From: Selaginella moellendorffii
Lineage: Eukaryota > Plantae > Lycopodiophyta
NCBI RefSeq assembly: GCF_000143415.4
Contig: NW_003314265.1
Coordinates: 3,716,443 to 3,780,442 of the forward strand
DNA length: 64,000 nucleotides
Direction of reading: 5' to 3'
Of this stretch, positions 22,286 to 61,249 are shown one piece after another. The notes beneath the pieces are model-generated. The model saw only the letters and a program-made list of their open reading frames with translations. It ran no database searches and was not told where the DNA came from. How positions within the stretch are numbered: the first letter of the stretch is position 1; each line of letters begins with the position of its first letter. Position numbers and translations under genes: made by a program.

Positions 22286-22372
22286 CCGTTAACATTAGCG
22301 TTAACAAAAAAAATTCATTCAGTTTTATTCATGAGAATGGGAAAAAAATTGGCGCTTTTGAATGCTCAAGGC

Positions 22373-23532
22373 TCAAGCCACATAGACATTCTTCCCGGAG
22401 AAGTGCTCCGTGTACACCTCGTGCATGTAATCCCTATAAGTCCTGCTGCGGTACTTTGCCGGACTCTCCTGGCTCACCAGCTCTGGAATCGGGCTGATCT
22501 CCGCATCCAGTGACGGCCCCAGGAACGCCCCGACGGACAGCCTCGAACTCTTCGAGTTCACCATCACCCTGTGCAATATGCTCTTGTACCTCCCATTGCT
22601 CAGCTTCTGAGATCACCAACCAAGGACAACATCAAGATCATTCCACAAACTTTTCGACTGCTCGTACCTCTAGCTGATCGCCCATGTTGACCACCAGCAT
22701 TCCCTCGAGTGGCCTCACGTTGTACCAATCCTCGCCTTGCTTCAGCTGCAATCCCCCGACTCCATCCTGGAGCACAAACGTGAGGCCGCCGCTGTCGGTG
22801 TGGCCTTCCATGCCCAAGGCCTGCCTCGGGTTCGGGCAAGCCGGATAGAAGTTTGCTCTCGTCAGAAGAACCATGTCTGCGAATGCTTCCAGAAGACGGT
22901 TTGAGCGGAGGCCAAGTCCCTCGGACATGACCAACAGCATCCTCTTCCCGAGCTTGAAGATGTTTCTGGCGTACTCGGATCCAACGTCCCTGTTGCATAT
23001 AGAGCGTCAGCAATCTAGATCAATACGAAAAATCAAGGAGCGAGAAACTGACTTGTAGCTGGCTGGGAACGCGGGCCAGGGGTGCACTCCGAGGGACTCT
23101 TCCTTGAGCCACATCTGGAGGTGGTCGTGCCACTCAAGCTTCTCTTCTTTCGAAGGCATCATGCTGGTGCAGTAGCGGACGGGTGTGAAGATCTCCTCGG
23201 TGTAGTACCGCATCTTGTCCTCGCTGGGCGAGTTGAAGAACTCGAGAGCACACCTCATCACATCCTCGGTGTGAATTCCGTGGTTCTTGAGCTGCAAGTC
23301 AGAAGAACAACAACTTACAGGAAAAAGATACCTCATCAAAACTTACGTAGAACATTCCGTACTTTGTGCAAGCGTCAACGAGATCCCTCTCGAAGCTCTC
23401 GCTCGCCACGTCGACTATCGGCAGCACCGCGTACCGGGAGACATCGGCAGCTCCATTCGGCATCATGTATCTCTCCGGAACGCCCGACAGTGTCCCGTTG
23501 CAGCTGTCAACAAATGCCTTGATGCCAGCCAT
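22373..23532 (-). CDS. 2-oxoglutarate/Fe(II) dioxygenase (DOXC class), cassette copy 1, 4 exons, frame intact
   Basis: MAGIKAFVDS..VPERYMMP..LPIVD..ACTKYGMFY|LKNHGI; NFYPACP..HTDSGGLT..GGLQ..VNMGDQLE|..SNGRYKSILHRV..RLS gives HxD, H and RxS. Confidence 0.92.
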
Positions 23533-24072
23533 GGATGGGACTGTGTAAGCAAGAAAGCTTGGAAGACGAAAGATGGAAATGGAAATGTATGCTTGGATGC
23601 TAGGCTCTCTCAACTTTGAGATGTGGATATCAGTCTCCTCCCAGTGCCCTGCTGATATAGTTGCAAAAAACTAAGATTTCTATTTGGCAGTACGAATTTA
23701 AGAACGTTACGATTTGCACGAACTTTCCATGGATCCGCCTCCATTCAAGACCAATTTGTAGACTTTTCCGTCTCAATGACAGATTAGCGTTCATCTGGGG
23801 CCAAATGCGAACGCTAATCTGTCACTGATATGGGAAATGCAGTCAACGCTCAACTTAGTTGACTTGCGCATAGAAAACTTAGCCACGAAACTACGTTGTT
23901 GCCAAGTTTATGTTAAACTCTCTGCTTGAAGAAGCTTGCCATTTCAAAGAGCAAGCGACGGCTCGAGGCAGAGCGTCACATGGACTGCAATTATAACAAG
24001 ATATAAAGGCATGAAAACCATGATTCTGAAGAGCTTTCTCGTTACCTTGTGCGGTCCACAAAGCTGGCAGCA

Positions 24073-25778
24073 ATGGCGCTAGCAATGGCCAAGGAACTCT
24101 TCTCCATCGCCAGCAATCGCTGGATCGTCGCAGTCTCGGGCTTCTACTTGATAGCAATCACCGGAAGCACGCTCACCAGCTTCAGCTTGTTCTCAAAGGA
24201 GCTCAAAATCTCCCTGCATTACAAGCAAGAGTCCGTCAATACCATCAGCTTCTTCAAGGATCTCGGCACCAGCATGGCTTTCCTGGCCGGCTTGCTCAAT
24301 GCGAGAGTCGGGCCCCCCGTCTCACCATGTTCGTCTCCGCATTGCTCAACCTGTTCGGCTACACCATGGCCTGGCTCGCCATCACTCACCAGATTGCTCG
24401 TCCACCAGCATGGCAAATGAGCTTCTATATTTTTCTCGTCGGCGCCTCTGTAGGCTTTGCAGTCACGGCTGTTCTGACCACCTGTGCCACAAACTTCCCG
24501 AAACACCACCAGGGGATGCTGCTGAGCTTGCTCGACGGCAGCAATGGCCTGGGAGCAACCGCATTCGCGGTTGTGTTCCAGACTTTCTTCCAGGTCCACG
24601 CTCGCTCGTTTCTGCTCTTCCTGGGGCTGCTACCGACGTTCCTGTATCTGCTGCTTGGCCTCTTCCTCGGGCCCGTGCCTGTCATCGAGAAGTCCAGCGA
24701 CAAGTCCATTCTCCGCTCGTTCCTCATCACCACCTTTGCCTTAGCTGCCTATCTCCTCGTCGTCACAGTCATCGAGGGGACCATACCGAGCAGGCTTCCA
24801 GACTCGGTGCCTTTCGTGTTCTTTGGTTTGATGCTGCTCATCGTCCTACTTCCAGTTGCTCTGGTTGTCCGAGCTAAGATTCGATCACATTCGAACAGTG
24901 CTGGTGCTGTCGAAAGCATACCGCCATCTCATAACTCTGAAGCTCAGCTCGCGGATATGAATTCCACGCCTAGTTCTCTGCAAGTCGTCGACCATTCTCC
25001 TTCTCAAGCTTCCAGCGCTGGCATCCACAGATGGTTCCAAGTTCCAGCGAGAGGGAAGGACTACAGACTCGTCCACGCCTTGCTGAGCATCGATATGTGG
25101 CTCATGCTCATCGCGACTTCCTGCGGCCTGGGAACCGTGTCCACCTTCTACAACAACTTGGGCCAGCTGAGCGCCTCCCTGGGATACTCCACCGCAAGGA
25201 TGAACATCTTCGTGGCTCTCCTCAACCTCTGGGACTTCCTGGGAGCAATCGGTTGCGGCTTCGTGTCCGAGATACTCCTCCACAAGTTTGGCATTGGACG
25301 GCCGTTCGTGTTCGCTGCGGTGGTCGGCTTTCTAGCGCTCGGCAACTTGCTCATCGCCTTGGGCCTTCCCGGCGCGCTGTACATCGGCTCCATCATCATC
25401 GGCCTCGCCACCGGAGGCCAGTGGGCGGTGCTGTCGACCATCATCGCGGAGATCTTCGGGCTCAAGCACTATGGAGTTCTCCAGAGCTTCCCAAACATCG
25501 CAAAGGGGATTGGGACGTATGTCCTGTCGGTGGAAGTTGCGGGTGTGTTCTACGATCGGCAAGCCAGGAGATACCGGGGCCCTGACACGCTGGAGGCCTC
25601 GCTCTTGTGCCACGGTGCCAAGTGCTACAGGGAAACGTTCTTCGTCATGGCCGCCACCTGTTTGTTTGGGTGTGCCATCGCCGTGGCTCTCAGCTTGAGG
25701 TCCGCCAAGTTCTACAGTGCGGAGGTGAGGCCCAGCTTGACGAGAAAAGTTGCTGCTGTTGTTGACGATGCATGCTAG
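24073..25778 (+). pseudogene. NFD4/nodulin-like MFS transporter, copy 1; +2 frameshift near 24311-24318
   Basis: GTCGGGCCCCCCGT here versus GTCGGCCCCCGT in copies 3 and 5. Otherwise near-identical to the intact 36361-38064 ORF. Could be a homopolymer sequencing error. Confidence 0.75.
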
Positions 25779-30024: not shown

Positions 30025-31195
30025 TCAAGCCACATAGACATTCTTCCCGGAGAAGTGCTCCGTGTACACCTCATGCATGTAATCCCTATAAGTCCTGCTG
30101 CGGTACTTTGCTGGACTCTCCTGGCTCACCAGCTCTGAAATTGGGCTGATCTCCGCGTCTAGTGACGGCCCCAGGAACGCCCCGACGGACAGCCTTGAGC
30201 TCTTCGAGTTCACCATCACCATGTGCAATATGCTCTTGTATCTCCCATTGCTCAGCTTATGATACAAGACAATCAACCAAGACAAAGATCAATCCACAGT
30301 TTCCCAAAACGTTTTCGACTGCTCGTACCTCTAGCTGGTCGCCCATGTTGACCACCAGCATTCCCTCGAGTGGCCTCACGTTGTACCAATCCTCGCCTTG
30401 CTTCAGCTGCAATCCCCTGGAGCACAAACGTGAGGCCGCCGCTGTCGGTGTGGCCTTCCATGCCCAAGGCCTGCCTCGGGTTCGGGCAAGCCAGATAGAA
30501 GTTTGCTCTCGTCAGAAGAACCATGTCTCCGAATGCTTCCAGAAGACGGTTTGAGCGGAGGCCAAGTCCCTCGGACATGACCAACAGCATCCTCTTCCCG
30601 AGCTTGAAGATGTTTCTGGCGTACTCGGATCCAACGTCCCTGTTGCGTATAGAGCGTCAGCAATCTAGCTCAATACCATAATCAAGGAACGAGAAACTGA
30701 CTTGTAGCTGGCTGGGAACGCGGGTCAAGGGTGCACTCCGAGGGACTCCTCCTTGAGCCACATCTGGAGGTGGTCGTGCCACTCGAGCTTCTCTTCTTTC
30801 GAAGGCATCATGCTGGTGCAGTAGCGGACGGGTGTGAAGATCTCCTCGGTGTAGGATCACATCTTGTCCTCGCTGGGCGAAGTGAAGAACTCGAGAGCGC
30901 ATCTCATCAAATCCTCGGTGTGAATTCCGTGGTTCTTGAGCTGCAAGTCAGAAGAACAACAACTTAGCAAACATGTACTACAGGAAAAAGACACCTCATC
31001 AAAACTTACGTAGAACATTCCGTACTTTGTACAAGCGTCAACGAGATCCGTCTCGAAGCTCTCGCTTGCCACATCGACTATCGGCAGCACCGCGTACCGG
31101 GAGACATCAGCAGCTTCATTCGGCATCATGTATCTGTCTGGAACGCTGTCCAGCGTCCCATTGCAGCTGTCAACAAATGCCTTGATGCCAGCCAT
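30025..31195 (-). pseudogene. 2-ODD copy 2, pseudogene
   Basis: CGA>TGA nonsense at 30857-30859, an 11-bp deletion near 30415, and the intron-3 CAG acceptor changed to CAT. Confidence 0.88.
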
Positions 31196-31656: not shown

Positions 31657-33032
31657 ATGGCACTAGCAATGGCCAAGGAACTCTTCTCCATCGCCAGCAA
31701 TCGCTGGATCATCGCAGTGTCGGGCTTCTATCTGATAGCAATCACCGGAGGCACGCTCACCAGCTTCAGCTTGTTCTCACAGGAGCTCAAAGTCTCCCTG
31801 CATTACAAGCAAGAGTCCGTCAATACCATCAGTTTTTTCAAGGATCTCGGCACCAGCATGGCTTTCCTGGCCGGCTTGCTCAATGCGAGAGTCGGACCCC
31901 GTCTCACCATGTTCGTCTCCGCATTGCTCAACTTGTTCGGCTACACCATGGCCTGGCTCGCCATCACCCACCGGCATGGCAAATGAGCTTCTATATGTTT
32001 CTCGTCGGCGCCTCTGTAGGCTTTGCAGTCACGGCTGTCCTGTCGACCTGTGCCACGAACTTCCCCAAACATCACGGGATGCTGCTGAGCTTGCTGGACG
32101 GCAGCAATGACCTGGGAGCAACCACATTCGCGGTTGTGTTCCAGACTTTCTTCCAGTTCCACGCTCGCTCCTTTCTGCTCTTCGATAAGTCTAAAGCTCA
32201 GCTCGCGGATATGAATTCCACCCCGAGTGCTCTGCAAGTCGTTGACCATTCTCCTTCTCAAGCTTCCGGCGCTGGCAGCTGCAGATGGTTCCAAGTTCCA
32301 GCGAGAGGGAAGGACTACAGGCTCGTCCACGCCTTGCTGAGCATCGATATGTGGCTCATGCTCATCGCAACTTCCTTCGGCCTGGGAACCGTGTCCACCT
32401 TCTACAATAACTTGGGCCAGCTGAGCGCCTCCCTGGGACACTCCACCGCAAGGATGAACATCTTCGTGGCTCTCCTCAACATCTGGGACTTCCTGGGAGC
32501 AATCGGCTGCGGCTTCGTGTCCGAGATACTCCTCCACAAGTTTGGCATTGGACGGCCGTTCGTGTTCGCTGCGGTGGTCGGCTTTCTAGCGCTCGGCAAC
32601 TTGCTCATCGCCTTGGGCCTTCCCGGGGCGCTATACATCGGCTCTATCATCATCGGCCTCGCCACCGGAGGCCAGTGGGCGGTGCTGTCGACCATCATCG
32701 CAGAGATCTTCGGGCTCAAGCACTATGGAGTTCTCCAGAGCTTCCCAAACATCGCAAAGGGGATTGGGACGTATGTCCTGTCGGTGGAAGTTGCGGGTGT
32801 GTTCTACGATCGGCAAGCCAGGAGATACCGGGGCCCTGACACGCTGGAGGCTTCGCTCCTGTGCCAAGGTGCCAAGTGCTACAGGGAAACGTTCTTCGTC
32901 ATGGCCGCCACCTGTTTGTTTGGGTGTGCCATCGCCGTGGCTCTCAGCTTGAGGTCCGCCAAGTTCTACAGTGCGGAGGTGAGGCCCAGCTTGACGAGAA
33001 AAGTTGCTGCTGTTGTTGACGATGCATGCTAG
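31657..33032 (+). pseudogene. MFS transporter copy 2, pseudogene
   Basis: 16-bp frameshifting deletion between CACC direct repeats near 31970, and a ~375-bp internal deletion at 32183 relative to copy 4. Confidence 0.9.
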
Positions 33033-34681: not shown

Positions 34682-35855
34682 TCAAGCCACATAGACATTC
34701 TTCCCGGAGAAGTGCTCCGTGTACACCTCGTACATGTAGTCCCTATGAGTCCTGCTGCGGTACTTTGCCGGACTCTCCTGGCTCACCAGCTCTGGAATCG
34801 GGCTGATCTCCGCATCTAGTGACGGCCCCAGGAACGCCGCGACGGACAGCCTCGAGCTCTTCGAGTTCACCATCACCCTGTGCAATATGCTCTTGTACCT
34901 CCCATTGCTCAGCTTCTGAGATCACCAACCAAGGACAACACTAAGATCATTCCACAAACTTTTCGACTGCTCGTACCTCTAGCTGATCGCCCATGTTGAC
35001 CACCAGCATTCCCTCGAGTGGCCTCACGTTGTACCAATCCTCGCCTTGCTTCAGCTGCAATCCCCCGACTCCATCCTGGAGCACAAACGTGAGGCCGCTG
35101 CTGTCGGTGTGGCCTTCCATGCCCAAGGCCTGCCTCGGGTTCGGGCAAGCCGGATAGAAGTTTGCTCTTGTCAGAAGAACCGTGTCTTCGAATGCTTCCA
35201 GAAGACGATTTGAGCGGAGGCCAAGTCCCTCGGACATGCCCAACAGCATCCTCTTCCCGAGCTTGAAGATGTTTCTGGCGTACTCGGATCCAACGTCCCT
35301 GTTGCATATAGAGCGTCAGCAATCTAGATCAATACGAAAAATCAAGGAGCGAGAAACTGACTTGTAGCTGGCTGGGAACGCGGGCCAGGGGTGCGCTCCG
35401 AGGGACTCTTCCTTGAGCCACATCTGGAGGTGGTCGTGCCACTCGAGCTTCTCTTCTTTCGAAGGCATCATGCTGGTGCAGTAGCGGACGGGTGTGAAGA
35501 TCTCCTCGGTGTAGTATCGCATCTTGTCCTCGCTGGGCGAGTTGAAGAACTCGAGAGCGCACCTCATCAAATCCTCGGTGTGAATTCCGTGGTTCTTGAG
35601 CTGCAAGTCAGAAGAACAACAACTTAGCAAACATGTACTACAGGAAAAAGACACCTCATTAAAACTTACGTAGAACATTCCGTACTTTGTGCAAGCGTCA
35701 ACGAGATCCCTCTCGAAGCTCTCGCTCGCCACATCGACTATCGGCAGCACTGCATACCGGGAGACATCGGCAGCTCCATTCGGCATCATGTATCTCTCCG
35801 GAACGCTCGACAGTGTCCCGTTGCAGCTGTCAACAAATGCCTTGATGCCAGCCAT
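34682..35855 (-). CDS. 2-ODD copy 3, apparently intact
   Basis: Same four exons and splice sites as copy 1; HTD, H and RLS retained. Confidence 0.88.
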
Positions 35856-36360: not shown

Positions 36361-38064
36361 ATGACGCTAGCAATGGCCAAGGAACACTTCTCCATCGCCA
36401 GCAATCGCTGGATCGTCGCAGTCTCAGGCTTCTACTTGATAGCAATCACCGGAGGCACGCTCACCAGCTTCAGCTTGTTCTCACAGGAGCTCAAAATCTC
36501 CCTGCATTACAAGCAAGAGTCCGTCAATACCATCAGCTTCTTCAAGGATCTTGGCACTAGCATGGCTTTCCTAGCCGGCTTGCTCAATGAGAGAGTCGGC
36601 CCCCGTCTCACCATGTTCGTCTCCGCATTGCTCAACCTGTTCGGCTACACCATGGCCTGGCTCGCCATCACTCACCGGATTGCTCGTCCACCGGCATGGC
36701 AAATGAGCTTCTATATGTTTCTCGTCGGCGCCTCTGTAGGCTTTGCAGTCACGGCTGTTCTGACCACCTGTGCCACAAACTTCCCGAAACACCACCAGGG
36801 GATGCTGCTGAGCTTGCTCGACGGCAGTAATGGCCTGGGAGCAACCGCATTCGCGGTTGTGTTCCAGACTTTCTTCCAGTTCCACGCTCGCTCCTTTCTG
36901 CTCTTCCTGGGGCTGCTACCGACGTTCCTGTATCTGCTGCTTGGCCTCTTCCTCGGGCCCGTGCCTGTCATCGAGAAGTCCAGCGACAAGTCCATTCTCC
37001 GCTCATTCCTCATCACCACCTTTGCCTTAGCTGCCTATCTCCTCGTCATCACAGTCATCGAGGGGAGCATGACAAGCAGGCTTCCAGACTCGGTGCCTTT
37101 GGTGTTCTTTGGTTTGATGCTGCTCATCGTCCTACTTCCAGTTCCTCTGGTTGTCCGAGCTAAGATTCGATCACATTCGAACAGTGCTGGTGCTGTCGAA
37201 AGCATACCGCCATCTCATAACTCTGAAGCTCAGCTCGCGGATATGAATTCCACCCCGAGTGCTCTGCAAGTCGTCGACCATTCTCCTTCTCAAGCTTCCG
37301 GCGCTGGCATCCACAGATGGTTCCAAGTTCCAGCGAGAGGGAAGGACTACAGGCTCGTCCACGCCTTGCTGAGCATCGATATGTGGCTCATGCTCATCGC
37401 AACTTCTTGCGGCCTGGGAACCGTGTCCACTTTCTACAACAACTTGGGCCAGCTGAGCGCCTCCCTGGGATACTCCACCGCAAGGATGAACATCTTCGTG
37501 GCTCTCCTCAACATCTGGGACTTCCTGGGAGCAATCGGCTGCGGCTTCGTGTCCGAGATACTCCTCCACAAGTTTGGCATTGGACGGCCGTTCGTGTTCG
37601 CTGCGGTGGTCGGCTTTCTAGCGCTCGGCAACTTGCTCATCGCCTTGGGCCTTCCCGGCGCGCCGTACATCGGCTCCATCATCATCGGCCTCGCCACCGG
37701 AGGCCAGTGGGCGGTGCTGTCGACCATCATCGCAGAGATCTTCGGGCTCAAGCACTATGGAGTTCTCCAGAGCTTCCCAAACGTTGCAAAGGGGATTGGG
37801 ACGTATGTCCTGTCGGTGGAAGTTGCGGGTGTGTTCTACGATCGGCAAGCCAGGAGATACCGGGGCCCGGACACGCTGGAGGCCTCGCTCTTGTGCGACG
37901 GTGCCAAGTGCTACAGGGAAACGTTCTTCGTCATGGCCGCCACCTGTTTGTTTGGGTGTGCCATCGCCGTGGCTCTCAGCTTGAGGTCCGCCAAGTTCTA
38001 CAGTGCGGAGGTGAAGCCCAGCTTGACGAGAAAAGTTGCTGCTGTTGTTGACGATGCATGCTAG
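36361..38064 (+). CDS. NFD4/nodulin-like MFS transporter copy 3, intact, intronless
   Basis: 567-aa frame. NRW..FSLFSQELK..ISFFKDLG, TCATNFP, NNLGQL..LGY, EIFGLKHYGVL, C.GAKCY are typical of the family; many TM segments. Confidence 0.92.
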   Translation: MTLAMAKEHFSIASNRWIVAVSGFYLIAITGGTLTSFSLFSQELKISLHYKQESVNTISFFKDLGTSMAFLAGLLNERVGPRLTMFVSALLNLFGYTMAWLAITHRIARPPAWQMSFYMFLVGASVGFAVTAVLTTCATNFPKHHQGMLLSLLDGSNGLGATAFAVVFQTFFQFHARSFLLFLGLLPTFLYLLLGLFLGPVPVIEKSSDKSILRSFLITTFALAAYLLVITVIEGSMTSRLPDSVPLVFFGLMLLIVLLPVPLVVRAKIRSHSNSAGAVESIPPSHNSEAQLADMNSTPSALQVVDHSPSQASGAGIHRWFQVPARGKDYRLVHALLSIDMWLMLIATSCGLGTVSTFYNNLGQLSASLGYSTARMNIFVALLNIWDFLGAIGCGFVSEILLHKFGIGRPFVFAAVVGFLALGNLLIALGLPGAPYIGSIIIGLATGGQWAVLSTIIAEIFGLKHYGVLQSFPNVAKGIGTYVLSVEVAGVFYDRQARRYRGPDTLEASLLCDGAKCYRETFFVMAATCLFGCAIAVALSLRSAKFYSAEVKPSLTRKVAAVVDDAC

Positions 38065-41377: not shown

Positions 41378-44300
41378 GAAACTTAATGTCCGTCGCCAAG
41401 ATATGTGATCAAAATGCGGTGGTAGTCTTTGATGTGAAGGGAGTCTCTTTAGTTGACTCTAGTGACTTTCAAATGCTTAGTATACAGTTGCTTCGTGGGT
41501 CACGCATTGGGTATTTGTATGAGATTACTGCTATCGACCCAGTTCAGGCCTTTCAGACTGTGGAGGCAGATTCTCGTGCGGAGCTTTGGCATAAAAGACT
41601 TGGTCATGTTCATTACCAATCTCTTCAACGGATGAAATCCTAAGATATTGTTACTGGATTGGATTTCCGACATATCTCATCTACATTTTGTGAAGCTTGT
41701 GTTTTAGGCAAGCATCACCGCCAGAATTTCTCACTGAGTAAGCATCGAGCACTTGGACTTTTGGACTTAGTCCATTCTGATCTTTGCGGCCCCATGGACG
41801 TGCCAAGTCACAATGGCACAAGATATTTCATCACATTCATTGATGACTATAGCCATCGAACATGCATCCACTTCTTGATACGTAAGAGTGATGCAGTTGC
41901 TGCCTTTCAAACATACAAGGTGTACGTTGAAAACCTCCTTAGTCGAAAGATAAAAGCTCTTCGAGTTGATGGTGGTGGTGAATACCTCAACAATGAGCTT
42001 CGGGGCATCTGTCGTGATGTAGGCATACGACTGCAAGCTACAGCCCGCTACACCCCCCAGCAAAATGGTGTTGGAGAAAGGAAGAATCATACTCTTGTCA
42101 ATGCTGCTCGTGCTTTGTTAGCTAATGCACATCTTGACAAGATGTTTTGGCAAGAGGCCATAGCCACAGCAATGCATGTACAAAATCGCCTTGCCATGGC
42201 TGCTTTGGATGGAAAAACCCATGAGGCATTTTGGACAGGTTCTACTCCTGATGTGTCCCACTTTCGGGTCTTCGGTTGTGCAGCATACGCACATACCCTT
42301 GATCAACTTTGGAAAAAACTAGATCCCAAGAGTAAAAAATTCATCTTCGTGGGATATGCACAGGACGACACTATCGGGAGAAAAGCTTACAAGTTGTGGG
42401 ATCTTGCATCTCACAAGGCTATTGTAAGCACAGATGTCATGTTCAATGAAGACGACTTTCCCATGCGTACAGAGGCTCTTCAAGATCCTTCCTTTATTGC
42501 TGAAACTCGACTTGTTCCTTTAATCCCACTTATGGGAGATGGTCCACTCTTGCCTCCACCTCAAGATCCTATTCATGAGTTGCCACCAGAGATTCCATTG
42601 TGGAATCCTCCACTTCTAGACATGCTTGAACCAGCTGATCTTCCTGTAGTTGAGGACATGCCTCCAACACCTCCACCACCTTGTCGACGTCGTGGCATGC
42701 ATGATCCGATGCCAGTTCTTGATCACCCCTGGGAACGTCGGCCCTCGTTAAAAGTCCGGGAAAATGCTGAAGCAGATGCTGCAGAGCTTGATGACTTTTG
42801 TGGCCTTGTTGACATCGGCATCCCCATGACCTATGATAAGGCCATCTCAGGACCTGAGGCTTCATCTTGGATGGAAGCTATTGCGGAAGAAGTTTCTTCC
42901 ATTCGGGCTAACGGAACTTATGTTCTAGTTGATTCAGCGCCACCGGGACGATGTGTTTTGGATCCAAAATGGATTTTTTCCAAAAAGTATGGGAAGATGG
43001 CCAGGTTGTACGTTATAAGGCACGGTTGGTTGTTCGCGGTTTTCGCCAAGTCCATGGCCTTCACTACGATGAAACATTCTCACCGGTTGTAAAAATGGCC
43101 AGCCTCCGTACTCTTTTTGCCCTTGCGGCTGCTCGCAAATGGCAAGTCCACCATATGGATGTCAAAACTGCATTTCTGAATGGGGATTTGCAAGAGGACA
43201 TCTATATGCATATACCTCCTGGTTTTGAGGACGATGTTGCCCCTGGTGGCCCTATATGGCAATTGCGGAAAGCTTTGTATGGCTTAAAACAGAGCTCCTG
43301 TATTTGGTATCAAAAATTTGATGCCACCCTACGTGCTCAAGGCTTTCGTCGCTGTTATGCTGATCACAATGTGTATGTCAATGGTCATGCTGAGTGCATG
43401 GTTATTGTGGCCCTCTACGTTGATGATTTGCTCATCATGGGTGATGACAACGATGCCATTGCTGCTCTGAAAGATGCTCTCAACCAGCAATTCCAGATGA
43501 AGGACCTTGGCCAAGTCTCCTACTTTCTTGGCTTTGAAGTCACACGTGATCCTGATTCTGGTGGCTACATGCTTAGCCAACAGCGTAAAGTTGAAGTCTT
43601 GCTGGATCGGTTTGGTATGCGTGATTGCCACCCCATCAAGACCCCGATGGTCATTGGTGCTATCAACCTCACAGTTGAGCAATCTGGTGAGCTTCTACCC
43701 ACTGGGACTCCCTATTGGCATCTCATTGGTTGCCTCACATATTTGGCCCTGATGACTCGCCCCGACATCACATATGTGACTATTGCCTTGAGTCAGTACA
43801 ACACATCACCAACCACCATACATTGGCAAGCTGCCAAGCGTATTGTGAGATACCTCCGGGGCACTATGGACTATGGCATTGCTTATTCAAGGGGTGATGC
43901 ATCATTAGCATGCTACACAGATGCTAGTTTTGCCAACAACAAAGGTCATCACTCGACTTCTAGCATTTGCCTTTCCTTCTCAAGAAGTGCCATCACGTGG
44001 GCCTCCAAGTGACAATCTATGGTGGCCCTTTCTAGTGCAAAAGCGGAGTGCATCGCACTCACTACTAGTAGCAGGGACGTGGTCTGGGCTTGAGGGTTAC
44101 TTGCTAAGCTGGGATGTGCATGAGCTGGCCCCACTACTTCTTGGTGTGACAACTGAAGCAGCATTGCCATGTCCAAGAACCCCATCCACCATGCCCGCTC
44201 GAAGCACATTGAAGTCCAATTTCACTACGTGCGTGAGTTGGTTGACGGGGGCACCCTCGCCATCCAACATCTCGGGACACAGGATATGCCAGCCAATCTT

Positions 44301-46847
44301 CTCACTAAGCCGTTGGGGTCACACCAATTTCAGCTCCTACGTGACAGATTTGGTTTGGTGAGTGGCTTCGGTTTGGGGGGGAGTGTTACACGACACACCC
44401 TCGCCACGTGTCCATTAGGGTTTTCCTGTTCTGTCCGCTAGCGCGGTGTGCTTTGATCCCGATTTGTCTCAAACATTACCTAGTGGCGCAAACAATCGGC
44501 CCTGCGTGATTGCCGTGCCTTCTCTGCAGAAAAAGGCTCCGAATGGGCTTTTTCATCCGCCCTAACTTGGGAATCACAAGCTCCATCTGCCGATGTAACA
44601 ACCAAAAAGAAACATTGAGCACCGCCACCAGCTGCAAGCCTTGAATGCCGCGAGCACCAGCGACCTCTGGAGAAATCTCTCGGTTCCCCGATGCACGAGT
44701 TGTAGAAGCGCTTCCTGCCCCAGCACCTCCCGGATCCATGAGCTATAGAAGTGTTTCCCTGATCATCGATTGGGAGCTGCTCTTGTTGCCTGCGCCACAG
44801 GTTGTCGCGGTCCTTGATCGAGCTCCCAGTGCGGAATTTGGCGTCCAGCTTGCTGGGTTCGTCTTGTAGCGCTTGCTCTTTGGTGCAACAGATCTAGAAA
44901 AAAGTGACTTCTCGGAGGATCATCAAAGCATTTTCAAGAGAAAGATCTGCCCAAGAAATGGTAGCCGATGACGTGGCGCGCTGCCAACCCAAGTGGAGCG
45001 TCACATCAACATTGGTTGTTTACTACTCATTCTACATGACAATATTATGGAGCAAACATCTCTTCAGCTTTCTGAAGAAATTTGTTCTTCGACGTGATGG
45101 GTTTGTGCTTAGCGATGTTATGGCTGAAACTAGCTGTCAGTTACTTAGGATTAAACATGCATTCAACAGCGCACACTGCAGTATGTGTGGGGTGAGCTGA
45201 TCTATGACACTGTCTCTTGGTTTAAATTCTCGCATGTTGAATTCTACAAATGAGTCAACGAAAGTTAATGTAGCGTTGGGAGGACAAATCAACAAGCACT
45301 ACCTCCAGAAATACCATTTATGTTACTTTCATGTGTTGATCAACAAATACAGTAGACCTGAAACAGGAGGTTCAAGAAAAGGAAAAACCCCTTGGAAGTT
45401 ATTTTACTAACCTTGAAGTAGGGATGTTATATATCAGGATGCCTAAGCATTTTTCCATGGTATTCATGATGGTAGAACTTATAATGTTCTCAATGTTTAT
45501 CCTAGTGTGAGCAACAATTCTACCCATAATGTTCATGTCAATGTGCGTGGAGTTAAGGATGTCAGCATACTATCAGTTCAGTGAACTAACTTTTACATGA
45601 AAATATGAATACTTATGAAACTTGAACATAGAATATTTACCTCATTCATCATAGCCAATTAGAAATTGTCATCTTTTGTATATTTAGTAGCTCTTGTAGT
45701 AGGATCACTGAATGGCTCAATCACAGGGTTTTGCAGGAACTTTATCCCATGTATGTATGTTATCTGATAGCTTGCCAAGTTGCACACGAACAAGCTCTAG
45801 ATGGATCCATGAATTTGACTTCACCCATGTTGAGTGCCCCACATGTGGGAGCTAATCCGATGTTTAAGATAGTCTTGGACATTCGAGTTGACAATGTTGA
45901 CCTATCTATTAGTCAAATGCTAGCTAAAACTGAATGTGAAAGTCAAAATGCTAGATGATATTTCCAAATACTTACAATCAGCTGAAACTAGGCATTTGTG
46001 CTCAAGACAAAGCTCATAACAGCAAGAAGAATGATTGATGGGACTTTTGCCAAAGCTTACCCGGTGCTACTGGAGCATATTCTGTAAGGAAGTGGATATG
46101 TTGGCCAGTAGGGAGTGGAGTCCAGGTGTGATTCAGCCGGGCAAAAGGGACTTGTATACGACATTCAACCGTATTAATCTTACCTCTGTAACTTTGGATA
46201 TACCAAAGCATAACGGGCGAGGATTTGAACTGTACTTTCAACAAGCTATGACCAACGTAGCTGTTTCATAGACATAAGCCCGTGTGGTTTTGTGTCATGG
46301 TTTCTTGTGTTGATCTTCTAGTGACTTGCAGATTTCTCTATGAGTTCGCCCTCGATCAATATCTAGGTCTTGCTGAAAACTGCAGGCAAAAATTTCTCAA
46401 CTATCTATCGAAGTTCAAGTTGCTGAGGGATGGCAGCTGAAAATCTCAAGAAAATGAAAAGAAAGAATGGACACCTGCTGGGAAACCACTGCTTTTGGTG
46501 AGGACTTTCACCTTAGTCATATCATTCTGGTACCTCAGAGCTTCTTCGCTGCCTTAAAAAAATGATGAGACTTTATATAATAAGAAGCTTCGTATGTCTT
46601 TCATATTGTGATTTTAAAAAGTTATATTGCTTAACAATACATTGCTGGACTTCCTCCCAGATTGTTAAACTTTTACGATCTTCTACGCAGCACACAGTCG
46701 GCTTGCCATGACATTTCGTACCTCTATATAATATTGTGATAAAATCTTTGCTTATCAAACTAAGATCCTTGTGAGCAAACATTTCTTGCAACTGTTTTAT
46801 TTGTGAGAATGAGAAAAAAATTGGTGCCTTTGACTACCCCCCAAGAC

Positions 46848-48029
46848 TCAAGCCACATAGACATTCTTCCCGGAGAAGTGCTCCGTGTACACCTCGTGCA
46901 TGTAATCCCTATAAGTCCTGCTGCGGTACTTTGCTGGACTGTCCCGGCTCACCAGCTCTGGAATCGGGCTGATCTCCGCGTCTAGTGACGGCCCCAGGAA
47001 CGCCCCAACGGACAGCCTTGAGCTCTTCGAGTTCACCATCACCCTGTGCAATATGCTCTTGTATCTCCCATTGCTGAGCTTCTGATACAAGACAATCAAC
47101 CAAGACAAAGATCAATCCACAGTTTCTCAAAACGTTTTCGACTGCTCGTACCTCTAGCTGATCGCCCATGTTGACCACCAGCATTCCCTCGAGTGGCCTC
47201 ACGTTGTACCAATCCTCGCCTTGCTTCAGCTGCAATCCCCCGACTCCATCCTGGAGCACAAACGTGAGGCCGCCGCTGTCAGTGTGGCCTTCCATGCCCA
47301 AGGCCTGCCTCGGGTTCGGGCAAGCCGGATAGAAGTTTGCTCTCGTCAGAAGAACCATGTCTGCGAATGCTTCCAGAAGACGGTTTGAGCGGAGGCCAAG
47401 TCCCTCGGACATGACCAACAGCATCCTCTTCCCGAGCTTGAAGATGTTTCTGGCGTACTCGGATCCAACGTCCCTGTTGCATATAGAGCGTCAGCAATCT
47501 AGAGCAATACCGTAATCAAGGAGCGAGAAACTGACTTGTAGCTGGCTGGGAACGCGGGCCAGGGGTGCGCTCCGAGGGACTCTTCCTTGAGCCACATCTG
47601 GAGGTGGTCGTGCCACTCGAGCTTCTCTTCTTTCGAAGGCATCATGCTGGTGCAGTAGCGGACGGGTGTGAAGATCTCCTCGGTGTAGTATCGCATCTTG
47701 TCCTCGCTGGGCGAGTTGAAGAACTCGAGAGCGCACCTCATCACATCCTCGGTGTGAATTCCGTGGTTCTTGAGCTGCAAGTCAGAAGAACAACAACTTA
47801 GCAAACATGTACTACAGGAAAAAGGTCTTTCTTGAAAACTTACGTAGAAAATTCCGTACTTTGTACAAGCGTCAACGAGATCCCTCTCGAAGCTCTCGCT
47901 TGCCACATCGACTATCGGCAGCACCGCGTACCGGGAGACATCGGCAGCTTCATTCGGCATCATGTATCTGTCTGGAACGCTGTCCAGCATCCCGTTGCAG
48001 CTGTCAACAAATGCCTTGATGCCAGCCAT
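46848..48029 (-). CDS. 2-ODD copy 4, apparently intact
   Basis: Four exons, splice sites and catalytic motifs intact. Confidence 0.88.
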
Positions 48030-48516
48030 GGATGGGACTGTGTAACCAAGAAAGCTTGAAAGATGAAAGATGGAAATGGAAATGTATGCTTGGATGCTAG
48101 GCTTTCTCAACTTTGAGATGCGGATATCAGTGTCCTCCCAGTGCCCTGCTTATATAGTTGCAAAAAATAAGATTTTCAGGTCGGCAGCACGAAGATGATA
48201 AAAATGTTACCATTGCGCCGATTCCGGATCCGCCCCCCGCTCAAGACCATTTTGTAGACTTTTCCGTACCCGTGACTTGACCAGCGTCCGCATCTGGCCC
48301 TGCCCCAGATCCACATCAAGCGTCAATGCTCAACTTAGTTGACCCACGACATAGAAAATTGGAGCCACGAAACTTCGGAATTGTCACGTTTTTGTATCGA
48401 ACAGGAAAGATCGTCCACGCAAGTCCGGTCGTGGCACGGACTGCAAAAACAAAAGCCTTTGCATAAAGGACGATGATTTTATAGAGCTTTCTTGTTACCT
48501 CACAGCGCTGGCGGCA

Positions 48517-50298
48517 ATGGCGCTAGCAATGGCCAAGGAACTCTTCTCCATCGCCAGCAATCGCTGGATCATCGCAGTGTCGGGCTTCTACCTGATAGCA
48601 ATCACCGGAGGCACGCTCACCAGCTTCAGCTTGTTCTCGCAAGAGCTCAAAGTCTCCCTGCATTACAAGCAAGAGTCCGTCAATACCATCAGTTTTTTCA
48701 AGGATCTCGGCACCAGCATGGCTTTCCTGGCCGGCTTGCTCAATGCGAGAGTCGGACCCCGTCTCACCATGCTCGTCTCCGCATTGCTCAACTTGTTCGG
48801 CTACACCATGGCCTGGCTCGCCATCACCCACCAGATTGCTCGTCCACCGGCATGGCAAATGAGCTTCTACATGTTTCTCGTCGGCGCCTCTGTAGGCTTT
48901 GCAGTCACGGCTGTCCTGTCGACCTGTGCCACGAACTTCCCCAAACATCACCAGGGGATGCTGCTGAGCTTGCTCGACGGCAGCAATGGCCTGGGAGCAA
49001 CCGCATTCGCGGTTGTGTTCCAGACTTTCTTCCAGTTCCACGCTCGCTCCTTTCTGCTCTTCCTGGGGCTGCTACCGACGTTCCTGTATCTGCTGCTTGG
49101 CCTCTTCCTCGGGCCCGTGCCTGTCGTCGAGAGGCCTGGCGACAAGTCCATTCTCAACTCGTTCCTCATCACCACTTTTGCCTTGGCGGGCTATCTCCTC
49201 GTCGTCACAGTCATCGAGGGGACCATACCGAGCAGGCTTCCAGACTCGGTGCCTTTGGTGTTCTTCGGGTTGATGCTGGTCATCGTCCTACCTCCGGTTG
49301 TTCTGGTTGTCCGAGCTGAGCTTCGATCACATTCGAACGGTGCTGGTGTTGTCGATCAACTGCAAAGCATCCAGACACCACCGCCAACTGAGAAGTCTGT
49401 CGATCAACTTGAAAGCATCCACGCACCACCGCCAACTGATAAGTCTGAAGCTCAGCTCGCGGATATGAATTCCACCCCGAGTGCTCTGCAAGTCGTCGAC
49501 CATTCTCCTTCTCAAGCTTCCGGCGCTGGCAGCTGCAGATGGTTCCAAGTCCCGGCGAGAGGTAAGGACTACAGGCTCGTCCACGCCTTGCTGAGCATCG
49601 ATATGTGGCTCATGCTCATCGCGACTTCCTGCGGCCTGGGAACCGTGTCCACCTTCTACAACAACTTGGGCCAGCTGAGCGCCTCCCTGGGATACTCCAC
49701 CGCAAGGATGAACATCTTCGTGGCTCTCCTCAACATCTGGGACTTCCTGGGAGCAATCGGCTGCGGCTTTGCGTCCGAGATACTCCTGCACAAGTTTGGC
49801 ATTGGACGGCCGTTCGTGTTCGCTGCGGTGGTCGGCTTTCTAGCGCTCGGCAACTTGCTCATCGCCTTGGGCCTTCCCGGCGCGCTGTACATCGGCTCCA
49901 TCATCATCGGCCTCGCCACCGGAGGCCAGTGGGCGGTGCTGTCGACCATCATCGCGGAGATCTTCGGGCTCAAGCACTATGGAGTTCTCCAGAGCTTCCC
50001 AAACATCGCAAAGGGGATTGGGACGTTCGTCCTATCGGTGGAAGTTGCGGGTGTGTTTTACGATCGGCAAGCCAGGAGATACCGGGGCCCCGACACGCTG
50101 GAGGCCGGGCTCTTGTGCCACGGTGCCAAGTGCTACAGCGAAACCTTCTTCGTCATGGCCGCTACCTGTTTGTTTGGGTGCGCCATCGCCGTGGTTTTCA
50201 GCTTGAGGTCCGCCAAGTTCTACCGTGCGGAGGTGAGGCCCAGGTTGATGAGAAAAGTTGCTCCTGCTACTGTTGACGATGGAGTCCAGTCATGCTAG
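48517..50298 (+). CDS. NFD4/nodulin-like MFS transporter copy 4, intact (593 aa, most divergent copy)
   Basis: Full ORF with a 48-bp tandem repeat in the central loop and a distinct C-terminus. Confidence 0.92.
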   Translation: MALAMAKELFSIASNRWIIAVSGFYLIAITGGTLTSFSLFSQELKVSLHYKQESVNTISFFKDLGTSMAFLAGLLNARVGPRLTMLVSALLNLFGYTMAWLAITHQIARPPAWQMSFYMFLVGASVGFAVTAVLSTCATNFPKHHQGMLLSLLDGSNGLGATAFAVVFQTFFQFHARSFLLFLGLLPTFLYLLLGLFLGPVPVVERPGDKSILNSFLITTFALAGYLLVVTVIEGTIPSRLPDSVPLVFFGLMLVIVLPPVVLVVRAELRSHSNGAGVVDQLQSIQTPPPTEKSVDQLESIHAPPPTDKSEAQLADMNSTPSALQVVDHSPSQASGAGSCRWFQVPARGKDYRLVHALLSIDMWLMLIATSCGLGTVSTFYNNLGQLSASLGYSTARMNIFVALLNIWDFLGAIGCGFASEILLHKFGIGRPFVFAAVVGFLALGNLLIALGLPGALYIGSIIIGLATGGQWAVLSTIIAEIFGLKHYGVLQSFPNIAKGIGTFVLSVEVAGVFYDRQARRYRGPDTLEAGLLCHGAKCYSETFFVMAATCLFGCAIAVVFSLRSAKFYRAEVRPRLMRKVAPATVDDGVQSC

Positions 50299-50640
50299 CA
50301 GAGCTTTCATCTTCCATTTTTTTTGGTTCCAAGCTGTACAAGAACCAATGATCACATGAAAGGCCAAACAATAAGAGTAGAATAGGATGCTTCCAGCGTT
50401 TTTCAAAAAATAGAACTGGCAAGAGCTTCCGGAGCGACCAAATGCTTTCTTTCTTTCCTGGAGGGCCGTGCATTTCAATCGGAGGGAAGAATGCTATCAT
50501 CCCAATGCTAGAAATACTCCAGCGCCAGAGCGCTTGGGATCGGATTCTTACCTCGATCGAACAGGATCACTACGCCCTTTTAGGGTTTTTCGCCCTTTTG
50601 ATTCAGTATTTAATTGGGCTTTTTTAGGGTTTACTCGACA

Positions 50641-54084
<3,444 letters not shown>

Positions 54085-55506
54085 GTGGTTCAACTTGCTG
54101 CAAGATTTGATACAGTGCTTTCCACTGAACAATAATCCCCTTAAATAAACCACATACCGTAAGATGGGGAAAACGGATTAATACGAAATCATCCACTTTA
54201 TACTTTATAGGTGGACGATAATGGGAGTTGTAGTGCCATTGTTGTTCCATTTGTATGCAGCCTAAATGCTCGACAAACTCTATTGAACAAGTGGAAGAAT
54301 GTTCGTCAAATATTGATCTCACGATTTAGCATTAGCAGCTCATAGCAATTGCGAAGGTAAACCCAACTCTGTTGGTAATATTGGATCATGACTATATAAG
54401 AGTTTATATGGTGAAGCACCAACAGAACTCTGCACCCCTGTGACATATGCATACCGAAGAGACGGAAAATAACCATCTCAATTCGAATGCTGAAAGTTCA
54501 CATATTCGCAATCATCCCTTTGAATGTCCAAACAAGTCGTTCCACGAAACTATCTAATTGTGGATGATAAGCACTCATGAAAGTGTGGCGTATCCCCAAC
54601 CAAGATGTCAAAACATGAAATGCCTCAGCCATAAATGCGAGACCATTATCCGAAAGAATCTGCTCTGGATAAGAATGCTAGAACACCACTCAATTGAGGA
54701 GGAAGTATCCAAAAACAGTTGTAAAGGCGTTAGTAAGAACACTAACTTCAACCCAACAAGTCAAATAATCAGAAGCAATAATAACATATTCATTGCTAGC
54801 AATCAACCGTGGAAAAAGTCCTATAAGATCAAATACTACCAACTTAAACGGAGAAATTGCAATTAACTCTAACGGTCCTTCTGGAGCATGAGGGGGAGTA
54901 TTACGAATTTAGCATCAAACGCAGCTATGTATATGCTAGATAACATTACATCATATTTCAGGCTAATAGAAATACCTGTGTAACTTCTCGATCACACGAC
55001 GATGTCCCATATGCCCACCTAAAACAAGAGAATTGTGGTAGGCATGGAGAAACCGCAAAATAAAGACAGAAGGCACCACCAGCTGTAAATGACCATTAGG
55101 ATCCGTCCCCACAAAGTAAAGAAGGCCATCTTCAAAGCGTTACTAAGAATACAAATGTCAGAATGGCAAGTCATTAGCAAGTTATACAAGATTCTTAAAC
55201 CCATCTCGAATCCTTCATATCCATGGCTCAAGTTTTTGAGCCTCGCGAACCTCATCAATAAAAGGTAAATCCTGCTCTGCACCTTGCGAACACTGAACGT
55301 CGAGTATAGCAACTGCCGACGGCATAGAATCCTCGTTTAAAAACTCCACAGACGCCGGAATAACAAGCTCATTATAAATATAAGAAGATAGTGGAGAAAG
55401 AAGAGGAGTTTGAGAAAGGGCATTAGCATTAGCCATAAAACTCTCAAAGCAATGAATAACATCAAAATTATATATCTGAAACTTCAAAACTCATCAAGCA
55501 GAAAAT
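54085..55506 (-). mobile_element. Second, inverted copy of the Gypsy integrase fragment
   Basis: Collinear with 28061-29485, with the same junction to the cassette spacer (GCAGGCAAAAATTTCT). Confidence 0.85.
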
Positions 55507-57767: not shown

Positions 57768-59538
57768 CTAGCATGCATCGTCAACAACAGCAGCAACTTT
57801 TCTCGTCAAGCTGGGCCTCACCTCCGCACTGTAGAACTTGGCGGACCTCAAGCTGAGAGCCACGGCGATGGCACACCCAAACAAACAGGTGGCGGCCATG
57901 ACGAAGAACGTTTCCCTGTAGCACTTGGCACCGTGGCACAAGAGCGAGGCCTCCAGCGTGTCAGGGCCCCGGTATCTCCTGGCTTGCCGATCGTAGAACA
58001 CACCCGCAACTTCCACCGACAGGACATACGTCCCAATCCCCTTTGCAACGTTTGGGAAGCTCTGGAGAACTCCATAGTGCTTGAGCCCGAAGATCTCCGC
58101 GATGATGGTCGACAGCACCGCCCACTGGCCTCCGGTGGCGAGGCCGATGATGATGGAGCCGATGTACAGCGCGCCGGGAAGGCCCAAGGCGATGAGCAAG
58201 TTGCCGAGCGCTAGAAAGCCGACGACCGCAGCGAACACGAACGGCCGTCCAATGCCAAACTTGTGGAGGAGTATCTCGGACACGAAGCCGCAACCGATTG
58301 CTCCCAGGAAGTCCCAGAGGTTGAGGAGAGCCACGAAGATGTTCATCCTTGCGGTGGAGTATCCCAGGGAGGCGCTCAGCTGGCCCAAGTTGTTGTAGAA
58401 GGTGGACACGGTTCCCAGGCCGCAGGAAGTCGCGATGAGCATGAGCCACATATCGATGCTCAGCAAGGCGTGGACGAGTCTGTAGTCCTTCCCTCTCGCT
58501 GGAACTTGGAACCATCTGTGGATGCCAGCGCCGGAAGCTTGAGAAGGAGAATGGTCGACGACTTGCTGGAACTTCGAACCATCTGTGGATGCCAGCGCCG
58601 GAAGCTTGAGAAGGAGAATGGTCGACGACTTGCAGAGAACTAGGGGTGGAATTCATATCCGCGAGCTGAGCTTCAGAGTTATGACATGGCGGTATGCTTT
58701 CGACAGCACCAGCACTGTTCGAATGTGATCGAATCTTAGCTCGGACAACCAGAGCAACTGGAAGTAGGACGATGAGCAGCATCAAACCAAAGAACACCAA
58801 AGGCACCGAGTCTGGAAGCCTGCTCGGTATGGTCCCCTCGATGACTGTGACGACGAGGAGATAGGCAGCTAAGGCAAAGGTGGTGATGAGGAACGAGCGG
58901 AGAATGGACTTGTCGCTGGACTTCTCGATGACAGGCACGGGCCCGAGGAAGAGGCCAAGCAGCAGATACAGGAACGTAGGTAGCAGCCCCAGGAAGAGCA
59001 GAAAGGAGCGAGCGTGGAACTGGAAGAAAGTCTGGAACACAACCGCGAATGCGGTTGCTCCCAGGCCATTGCTGCCGTCGAGCAAGCTCAGCAGCATCCC
59101 CTGGTGGTGTTTCGGGAAGTTTGTGGCACAGGTGGTCAGAACAGCCGTGACTGCAAAGCCTACGGAGGCGCCGACGAGAAACATATAGAAGCTCATTTGC
59201 CATGCCGGTGGACGAGCAATCTGGTGAGTGATGGCGAGCCAGGCCATGGTGTAGCCGAACAGGTTGAGCAATGCGGAGACGAACATGGTGAGACGGGGGC
59301 CGACTCTCGCATTGAGCAAGCCGGCCAGGAAAGCCATGCTAGTGCCGAGATCCTTGAAGAAGCTGATGGTATTGACGGACTCTTGCTTGTAATGCAGGGA
59401 GATTTTGAGCTCCTGTGAGAACAAGCTGAAGCTGGTGAGCGTGCCTCCGGTGATTGCTATCAGGTAGAAGCCCGAGACTGCGACGATCCAGCGATTGCTG
59501 GCGATGGAGAAGAGTTCCTTGGCCATTGCTAGCGCCAT
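57768..59538 (-). pseudogene. MFS transporter copy 5 (inverted), frameshifted by a 67-bp tandem duplication
   Basis: 58498-58564 is repeated at 58565-58631; the ORF splits into 533-aa and 232-aa pieces. Confidence 0.88.
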
Positions 59539-59953: not shown

Positions 59954-59960
59954 TATATAA
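59954..59960 (+). promoter_or_regulatory. Candidate TATA box of the 2-ODD (TATATAA)
   Basis: About 120 bp upstream of the ATG; conserved in copies 2-5 across both promoter subtypes. Confidence 0.5.
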
Positions 59961-60080
59961 GCAGGGCACTGGGAGGAGACTGATATCCGCATCTCAAAGT
60001 TGAGAAAGCCTAGCATCCAAGCATACATTTCCATTTCCATCTTTCGTCTTCCAAGCTTTCTTGCTTACACAGTCCCATCC

Positions 60081-61249
60081 ATGGCTGGCATCAAGGCATT
60101 TGTTGACAGCTGCAACGGGACACTGTCGGGCGTTCCGGAGAGATACATGATGCCGAATGTCGCTGCCGATGTCTCCCGGTACGCGGTGCTGCCGATAGTC
60201 GACGTGGCGAGCGAGAGCTTCGAGAGGGATCTCGTTGACGCTTGCACAAAGTACGGAATGTTCTACGTAAGTTTTGATGAGGTATCTTTTTCCTGTAAGT
60301 TGTTGTTCTTCTGACTTGCAGCTCAAGAACCACGGAATTCACACCGAGGATGTGATGAGGTGTGCTCTCGAGTTCTTCAACTCGCCCAGCGAGGACAAGA
60401 TGCGGTACTACACCGAGGAGATCTTCACACCTGTCCGCTACTGCACCAGCATGATGCCTTCGAAAGAAGAGAAGCTCGAGTGGCACGACCACCTCCAGAT
60501 GTGGCTCAAGGAAGAGTCCCTCGGAGTGCACCCCTGGCCCGCGTTCCCAGCCAGCTACAAGTCAGTTTCTCGCTCCTTGATTTTTCGTATTGATCTAGAT
60601 TGCTGACGCTCTATATGCAACAGGGACGTTGGATCCGAGTACGCCAGAAACATCTTCAAGCTCGGGAAGAGGATGCTGTTGGTCATGTCCGAGGGACTTG
60701 GCCTCCGCTCAAACCGTCTTCTGGAAGCATTCGCAGACATGGTTCTTCTGACGAGAGCAAACTTCTATCCGGCTTGCCCGAACCCGAGGCAGGCCTTGGG
60801 CATGGAAGGCCACACCGACAGCGGCGGCCTCACGTTTGTGCTCCAGGATGGAGTCGGGGGATTGCAGCTGAAGCAAGGCGAGGATTGGTACAACGTGAGG
60901 CCACTCGAGGGAATGCTGGTGGTCAACATGGGCGATCAGCTAGAGGTACGAGCAGTCGAAAACTTTTTGAGAAACTGTGGATTGATCTTTGTCTTGGTTG
61001 ATTGTCTTGTATCAGAAGCTCAGCAATGGGAGATACAAGAGCATATTGCACAGGGTGATGGTGAACTCGAAGAGCTCAAGGCTGTCCGTCGGGGCGTTCC
61101 TGGGGCCGTCACTAGACGCGGAGATCAGCCCGATTCCAGAGCTGGTGAGCCAGGAGAGTCCGGCAAAGTACCGCAGCAGGACTTATAGGGATTACATGCA
61201 CGAGGTGTACACGGAGCACTTCTCCGGGAAGAATGTCTATGTGGCTTGA
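60081..61249 (+). CDS. 2-ODD copy 5 (inverted), apparently intact
   Basis: Four exons with GT-AG introns; all catalytic motifs present. Confidence 0.9.

Follow-up and report, generated by a model that had tools for sequence, protein, structure and literature searches.

Why do a dioxygenase gene and a membrane transporter gene stand head to head in copy after copy of an array in the lycophyte Selaginella moellendorffii, and are such neighbors kept together by a common function or by the DNA that they share? The question is raised by a stretch of 64,000 nucleotides of contig NW_003314265.1 (assembly GCF_000143415.4, forward strand positions 3,716,443 to 3,780,442), referred to here as the window. 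A first-pass annotation made from the sequence alone had noticed that a DOXC-class 2-oxoglutarate/Fe(II) dioxygenase (2-ODD) gene and an intronless NFD4/nodulin-like major facilitator superfamily (MFS) gene recur in this stretch as five divergent pairs, one of them inverted, plus a remnant, and had interpreted them as a co-regulated enzyme-plus-transporter cassette under dosage selection. The arrangement and both gene identities were borne out by self-BLASTN and by Pfam domains, and the combined evidence suggests that the two genes are probably an old, interlocked unit within the Selaginella lineage, duplicated as a single block and recently amplified. The amplification is much younger than the pairing, and the same pair recurs at anciently diverged paralogues on scaffolds GL377588.1 and GL377623.1.

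Self-BLASTN of the window resolved a segmental repeat of five 2-ODD plus MFS units that are 89-98% identical, located at 22322 to about 29630 (unit 1), 29631-34334 (unit 2), 34335-38457 (unit 3), 46430-51536 (unit 4), and, in inverted orientation, 61664-54086 (unit 5). A remnant unit (61738-64000) retains only the last ~53 MFS codons (61982-62135) and shared spacer. The distances between the two start codons are 540, 461, 505, 487, and 542 bp in copies 1-5, matching the originally described ~460-540 bp, with DIOX_N and 2OG-FeII_Oxy domains on one strand and Nodulin-like, MFS_1, and NFD4_C domains on the opposite strand. The source is S. moellendorffii, the copy 4 MFS open reading frame (ORF) being 99% identical to LOC112342070. 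Compared with the public scaffold GL377663.1 (GCA_000143415.2), the window displayed ~97-98% identity and a different order of units, and it therefore represents the other haplotype or another assembly of the GL377663.1 locus.

The 2-ODD gene was modeled with four exons and GT-AG introns from an alignment of the window copies with four public loci. It encodes 326 amino acids and is intact in four of the five copies, including copies 1 and 5 in addition to copies 3 and 4, which had been described as intact in both genes. These are copy 1 (22373..23532, minus strand; exons 23347-23532, 23053-23291, 22668-22989, and 22373-22606, with GT-AG at all introns), copy 3 (34682..35855, minus strand), copy 4 (coding region 46848..48029, minus strand; exons 47844-48029, 47536-47774, 47152-47473, and 46848-47081), and copy 5 (60081..61249, plus strand in the inverted unit). 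Copy 2 (30025..31195, minus strand) is a pseudogene: exon 2 contains two premature stops, exon 3 has lost 11 bp, and the intron-3 acceptor reads AT instead of AG. The exon ORFs scored 45 and 65 bits against DIOX_N and 2OG-FeII_Oxy (Pfam cut-offs 27.3 and 23), both domains were also found in the full-length public relatives P0122 and P0125, and the iron triad HxD...H (HTD plus the distal His in the KSILHRV stretch) and the 2-oxoglutarate-binding RxS motif (RLS) are kept in copies 1, 3, 4, and 5. The gene thus has the domains above threshold and the two motifs that mark a DOXC-class plant 2-ODD, and its catalytic motifs align with those of the diverged Selaginella paralogues described below and of Diphasiastrum and Amborella enzymes. 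The public model P0122 could not be reproduced with GT-AG introns and differs at two junctions; the RNA joints support the four-exon model. A longer N-terminus (a 400-amino-acid public call; P0121) was rejected as coding sequence, as the length of the upstream ORF that is in frame with it ranges from 0 to 76 codons among copies. On GL377663.1 (L002:15651-17229), one 2-ODD copy has its last ~16 codons replaced by unrelated sequence and is annotated as fused to a fragment of an alanyl-tRNA synthetase; a comparable fragment borders the window array at ~20.1-22.3 kb.

The MFS gene is intronless and intact only in copy 3 (36361..38064, plus strand; 567 amino acids), which has the same in-frame loop deletions as the public protein P0002, and in copy 4 (48517..50298, plus strand; 593 amino acids), where a 48-bp tandem duplication (49350-49447) lengthens the central loop. 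The remaining three of the five are pseudogenes. Copy 1 (24073..25778, plus strand) contains a 2-bp insertion with a frameshift at codon 80, which is not a sequencing error because the same insertion is present in the public haplotype copy L002a; copy 2 (31657..33032, plus strand) has 16-, 320-, and 55-bp deletions; and copy 5 (57768..59538, minus strand in the inverted unit) has a 67-bp insertion with a frameshift after about codon 324. Copies 3 and 4 scored 153-162 bits and 44-45 bits against PF06813 and PF23262, respectively, which places them in the Nodulin-like/NFD4 family, and the family-wide invariant residues are retained. The AlphaFold model of the copy 4 protein (predicted local distance difference test score 86, predicted template modeling score 0.85) has 12 long helices in an MFS fold, and the central loop is long and disordered.

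Evidence on transcription came from four RNA runs of four studies (24-34 Mb of contigs each, labeled only as guessed RNA), whose unstranded, assembled contigs were placed at a minimum of 97% identity and derive from one copy (copy 4) or its allele. These contigs skip exactly the three introns predicted for the copy 4 2-ODD (47082-47151, 47474-47535, and 47775-47843; three to four runs), so they represent RNA and the 2-ODD model is correct. Spliced contigs also define a 5' leader of the copy 4 2-ODD at 48030..48793 (minus strand), with minus-strand GT-AG introns at 48146-48210, 48441-48498 (alternatively 48294-48347), and 48658-48767 seen in up to four runs, and a single contig (X1 record 2) links 2-ODD exons 2 and 1 via leader exons to position 48658. 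Leader exon 48499-48657 has minus-strand splice sites at both ends and lies, together with the last intron, antisense to the MFS coding region that starts at 48517. Because leader exons bear minus-strand splice sites beyond this start codon, the start of the 2-ODD transcript lies 277 nt or more into the MFS coding region, and its leader runs antisense across the whole spacer, the MFS start codon, and the presumed MFS promoter. Nearly all copies, including dispersed ones, keep the leader splice sites, and the NCBI model P0121 from another locus begins in the same antisense stretch. Unspliced contigs that do not give the strand span the MFS body (48794-50326), and the MFS gene is likely expressed. 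The two transcription units are therefore interlocked rather than joined by a simple bidirectional promoter: such a promoter implies divergent, non-overlapping starts within 1 kb, and here 2-ODD exons at 48499-48657 and beyond 48767 lie inside the MFS gene. Since the spliced leader crosses the 460-540 bp spacer and extends over MFS coding sequence, this spacer is not the plain shared promoter implied by the original interpretation. The antisense overlap provides a structural reason for co-duplication and could lead to interference instead of co-regulation.

Because the 2-ODD mRNA starts inside the MFS gene, a working 2-ODD copy must carry the 5' end of its neighbor, and the pair duplicates as a block. 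This view is backed by the dispersed loci GL377601.1 and GL377572.1, which hold intact 2-ODD genes of the window type (lineage A) beside MFS genes shredded to fragments, since these remnants include the MFS 5' end. Both genes are under purifying selection, with dN/dS values that are not near 1. The 2-ODD copies displayed dN/dS of 0.03-0.28, with dS of 0.04-0.09 within the window and up to 0.16 against the dispersed copies, while copies 3 and 4 of the MFS gene displayed dN 0.045, dS 0.12, and omega 0.37. The window copies are paralogues and not alleles, because dS is only 0.01-0.02 between allelic pairs compared with 0.04-0.12 between copies. The claim that selection for dosage acts on the cassette did not hold up, as the MFS gene is dead in three of five units and shredded at two dispersed loci with an intact 2-ODD. 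A DIT1/PvcA piece that lies beside the intact 2-ODD and shredded MFS on GL377601.1 (L003:8715-9317) was considered as a lead toward an isocyanide cluster; it contains an internal stop and was discarded as a chance neighbor, and nothing similar to DIT1/PvcA was found in the window.

The near relatives of the full-length 2-ODD are lycophyte proteins only. They include three further S. moellendorffii 2-ODDs (P0125, P0126, and P0127), each of which faces a Nodulin-like MFS gene (555-557 amino acids) head to head; these pairs constitute lineage B. P0125 and P0126 belong to two inverted pairs ~25 kb apart on GL377588.1, with start codons 526-561 bp apart (a spacing given for these two of the three lineage B pairs), and P0127 is on GL377623.1. 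Identity to the window 2-ODD is 45-46% for P0125 and P0126 (alignment) and 42% for P0127 (search), the lineage B MFS proteins are ~43% identical to the window MFS, and both lineages keep both genes intact at a synonymous divergence that is saturated (dS about 1.7). An exhaustive protein search and a cluster look-up identified the lineage B MFS proteins as the closest relatives of the window MFS anywhere. The A and B MFS proteins form sister clades (support 100 in a quick tree and 100/100 in a careful tree) nested in a clade of lycophyte proteins (97/97) with an internal branching order that the tree does not settle, and the joint A and B clade was found only in Selaginella. The 2-ODDs of both lineages fall in one clade that contains lycophyte proteins only (99/97), and no 2-ODD was found beside the other NFD4-like MFS genes of S. 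moellendorffii. The same divergent pair is thus present at anciently diverged paralogues within the species; in Diphasiastrum, the closest relatives of either gene are unpaired within 10 kb.

These data are best explained by a unit of a predicted cytosolic DOXC-class 2-ODD and an intronless Nodulin-like/NFD4 MFS running in opposite directions, in which the 2-ODD mRNA starts in the MFS coding region and its long spliced leader passes antisense over the MFS start codon. One ancient block duplication would have produced lineages A (the window array) and B (GL377588.1 and GL377623.1). Lineage A would then have undergone a recent expansion (dS 0.04-0.12) through unequal recombination between repeated sequences and retroelements, along with dispersal to two further loci, after which selection would have retained most 2-ODD copies and a minority of MFS copies, the latter presumably acting in trans. 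The substrate oxidized by the 2-ODD would be a small molecule particular to the lineage, most likely a carboxylic acid, and the MFS would transport this acid or its product.

Several observations weigh against this history. In the 2-ODD tree, lineage B groups with Diphasiastrum P0124 (99/97) and not with lineage A, and forcing the A and B 2-ODDs together costs 12.8 log-likelihood units (approximately unbiased test, p = 0.03). Lineage B and P0124 are 66% identical, compared with about 46% between lineage A and either. The signature of a co-duplicated pair is thus mixed, with the same arrangement at diverged loci and sister MFS partners (100/100), but a clubmoss 2-ODD that joins lineage B. Judging from these sequences, the duplication of the unit may predate the split from the clubmosses, or lineage A may have accelerated and be misplaced in the 2-ODD tree; both of its partners have long stems (2-ODD, 0.89; MFS, 1.0-1.4). 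Neither of the genes closest to the pair in Diphasiastrum has a partner within 10 kb. The contigs, unstranded and from a single copy or its allele, reveal neither transcription starts nor expression levels, nor the strand from which the MFS body is read, and the interlock is documented by copy 4 transcripts and hence for lineage A only. A comparison of the A and B spacers revealed no conserved motifs.

Whether the partners also share a function was weighed against the structural tie. The best argument for a shared function is that two ancient lineages have retained both genes; the interlock and the repeated loss of MFS copies count against it. That enzyme and carrier handle the same metabolite is plausible and is proposed only tentatively, and it is doubtful that the pair was kept together for so long (from before the clubmoss split, if the 2-ODD tree is right) because it oxidizes and moves one lineage-specific organic acid as a minimal two-gene metabolic cluster. 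The first-pass annotation had favored a modify-and-transport module in which one metabolite is, for example, hydroxylated as a phenolic or organic acid and then exported, with co-regulation and dosage-selected amplification; vacuolar import in place of export, and control from the shared region, would belong to the same view. Such a module would explain why both genes are intact in two lineages diverged to saturation, why purifying selection acts on 2-ODD and MFS alike, and why RNA contigs cover both regions in the same four samples. The unusually long lineage A stems in both partners also agree with it, as do the nearest matches, which are carboxylate carriers for the MFS and carboxylic-acid enzymes such as JOX2 and F6'H1 for the 2-ODD. 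It is nevertheless rather unlikely in this form, given that any dosage selection would act on the enzyme alone in view of the decayed MFS copies, that the antisense overlap offers a non-adaptive reason for the linkage, and that the closest Diphasiastrum genes are unpaired within 10 kb.

The same overlap might instead be regulatory, with leader transcription over the MFS promoter and at least the first 90 codons interfering by collision or double-stranded RNA so that the two genes are expressed alternately and need no shared substrate. This relation is improbable, as contigs from the same samples span both genes and run X7 has a shorter leader that ends near 48494, before the MFS start codon; it does account for a head-on overlap that includes at least 277 nt of the MFS coding region and the whole spacer, a leader isoform with a depth similar to that of the coding joints in two of the runs, and the presence in the leader of several upstream ATGs along with an in-frame extension that is not conserved, features expected of regulatory leaders. 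An assembly or haplotype artefact, in which mis-joined alleles or collapsed or expanded repeats would simulate an array of fewer true units, was considered because the sequenced S. moellendorffii genome comprises two haplotypes about 98.5% identical (PMC8839085) and because the inverted unit 5 and a truncated SRP54 gene with a perfect 112-bp duplication are unlike GL377663.1. This is very improbable: the copies differ by 2-11% and by a dS far beyond that of alleles, their disabling mutations differ, and GL377663.1, an independent assembly, also holds a similar multi-copy array of at least five units, so that the array is not peculiar to one assembly. An old interlocked unit that duplicates as a block remains the preferred explanation.

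Comparison with known enzymes places the 2-ODD among the plant DOXC proteins (DMR6/DLO, JOX, F6'H1, and F3H/FNS I), with which it shares the DIOX_N and 2OG-FeII_Oxy domains, HxD...H and RxS, and a short-intron gene. The solved relatives nearest in sequence are JOX2 (jasmonate oxidase, 6lsv, 7e-53), F6'H1 (4xae), and ANS. It differs from these enzymes by its position in a lycophyte-only clade outside the seed-plant DLO-like/F3H-like groups and, in lineage A, by a shortened and fast-evolving N-terminus and ~39% identity to an Amborella DLO-like protein. A place in the DMR6/S5H group was not supported, as the 2-ODD falls in the lycophyte-only clade (99/97) and is not nested in the DMR6/DLO clade (DOXC38) in a tree that held no characterized DMR6 sequence and whose clade names are NCBI automatic ones. 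This is in line with a published account that assigns no S. moellendorffii enzyme to the salicylate-hydroxylase cluster DOXC38 and 26 to species-specific groups (PMC8839085, citing Kawai 2014).

The MFS resembles the Nodulin-like/NFD4 family (PF06813 plus PF23262) in full-length domain matches, the 12-helix fold, and invariant residues, and differs by only 33-35% identity to angiosperm NFD4-like proteins and by an A and B clade on long branches. No relative was found in the PDB by sequence. The proposed relationship to organic-acid carriers was upheld at the level of fold: among NCBIfam profiles the MFS scores best against that of the L-lactate carrier SfMCT (2.4e-20, 72.6 bits, far under the cut-off of 320), and the closest folds to the model are OxlT (8hpk), SfMCT (6hcl/6g9x/6zgr), and MCT1 (7ckr/6lz0) with template modeling scores by target of 0.76-0.82. 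Identity to these carriers is 11-15%, and the window MFS has in addition its long disordered loop. The sub-cut-off score does not place it among the oxalate/formate or monocarboxylate carriers and the resemblance is one of fold alone. A carboxylate cargo is accordingly suggested by the model as a lead only. A lead toward iron export from Leishmania LIR1 was not used, the nodulin-like match being weak (E about 1e-3) and the source paper mixing the family with VIT-like nodulins. No NFD4-like MFS with an assigned substrate turned up in the literature searched, and a Selaginella expression-atlas preprint had no mention of either family.

Plant metabolic clusters that include a transporter are exemplified by the sorghum dhurrin cluster (SbMATE2) and the poppy benzylisoquinoline alkaloid cluster (BUP1), and a plant biosynthetic gene cluster is usually defined by at least three non-homologous biosynthetic genes of one pathway. 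The window pair resembles such clusters in the linkage and co-inheritance of a specialized-metabolism enzyme and a membrane carrier. It differs by comprising two gene types with a single enzyme and no scaffold-forming enzyme, by overlapping divergent transcripts, by its lycophyte host, and by a nodulin-like MFS as the carrier. With a single type of enzyme and a single carrier in each unit, and retroelements and an SRP54 fragment as neighbors, it falls outside the usual definition. Similarity was also evident to bidirectional-promoter and 5'-overlapping divergent gene pairs, which are head to head at less than 1 kb in a long-kept arrangement; in contrast to classic bidirectional pairs, the transcripts overlap head-on and one promoter lies within the coding region of the partner. 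The first-pass annotation knew of no account of a 2-ODD plus MFS pairing, and likewise none was found in the literature searched.

Both families are large and mostly without assigned roles, and this pairing, which outlasted the saturation of synonymous sites, offers a concrete hypothesis for de-orphaning them together. The interlocked transcripts provide a clean case for asking what keeps plant gene neighbors together, as the MFS gene degenerates wherever there is a spare copy but keeps its 5' end. Should the tie prove purely structural, the pair is a useful warning that co-duplication need not mean co-function; if a shared acid does link the partners, they would constitute a metabolic cluster reduced to two genes, with divergent transcripts that interlock.

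The array also contains retroelements and a truncated gene. A Copia-type retrotransposon (40400..44400, plus strand) with gag-pre-integrase, rve, and RVT_2 domains separates units 3 and 4 and has an internal short-tandem-repeat array in its gag region (40656-41154). A further gag ORF was identified at 52734-53627 (minus strand), and a Gypsy integrase fragment (28286-28819) lies inside spacer DNA that recurs inverted at 54086-56410. The sole SRP54 gene of the window is a truncated 5' part (50600..51650, plus strand) with the perfect 112-bp tandem duplication (51424-51646) exactly at its break point. At the equivalent place in GL377663.1, SRP54 is intact and followed by aldose epimerase, GT34, and patatin genes, none of which are in the window. 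The first-pass annotation had described a co-duplicated and shredded SRP54; the gene is present once only and truncated, and the other units hold no more of it than 36-bp traces (38294-38328 and 62301-62336). Intron and spacer variants are shared among copies in a mosaic manner (window 22322-61664 versus the public loci), with a 14-bp intron-1 deletion common to copies 1 and 5 and two spacer types (copies 1/3/5 versus 2/4), and the adjacency of units also differs between the two haplotypes. This pattern suggests unequal crossing-over or gene conversion within the array.

Upstream of the array, an intact pentatricopeptide-repeat gene of 605 amino acids was identified at 6711-8528 (minus strand), and an ORF with a concanavalin-A-like lectin/Laminin_G_3 domain (E 3e-23) lies in an AT-rich stretch at 3738-4466 (minus strand). 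Exon-sized ORFs matching the Aa_trans amino-acid transporter and DUF4005 at 14389-15006 and 17676-18437 (both minus strand), between the pentatricopeptide-repeat gene and the array, look like parts of ordinary multi-exon plant genes.

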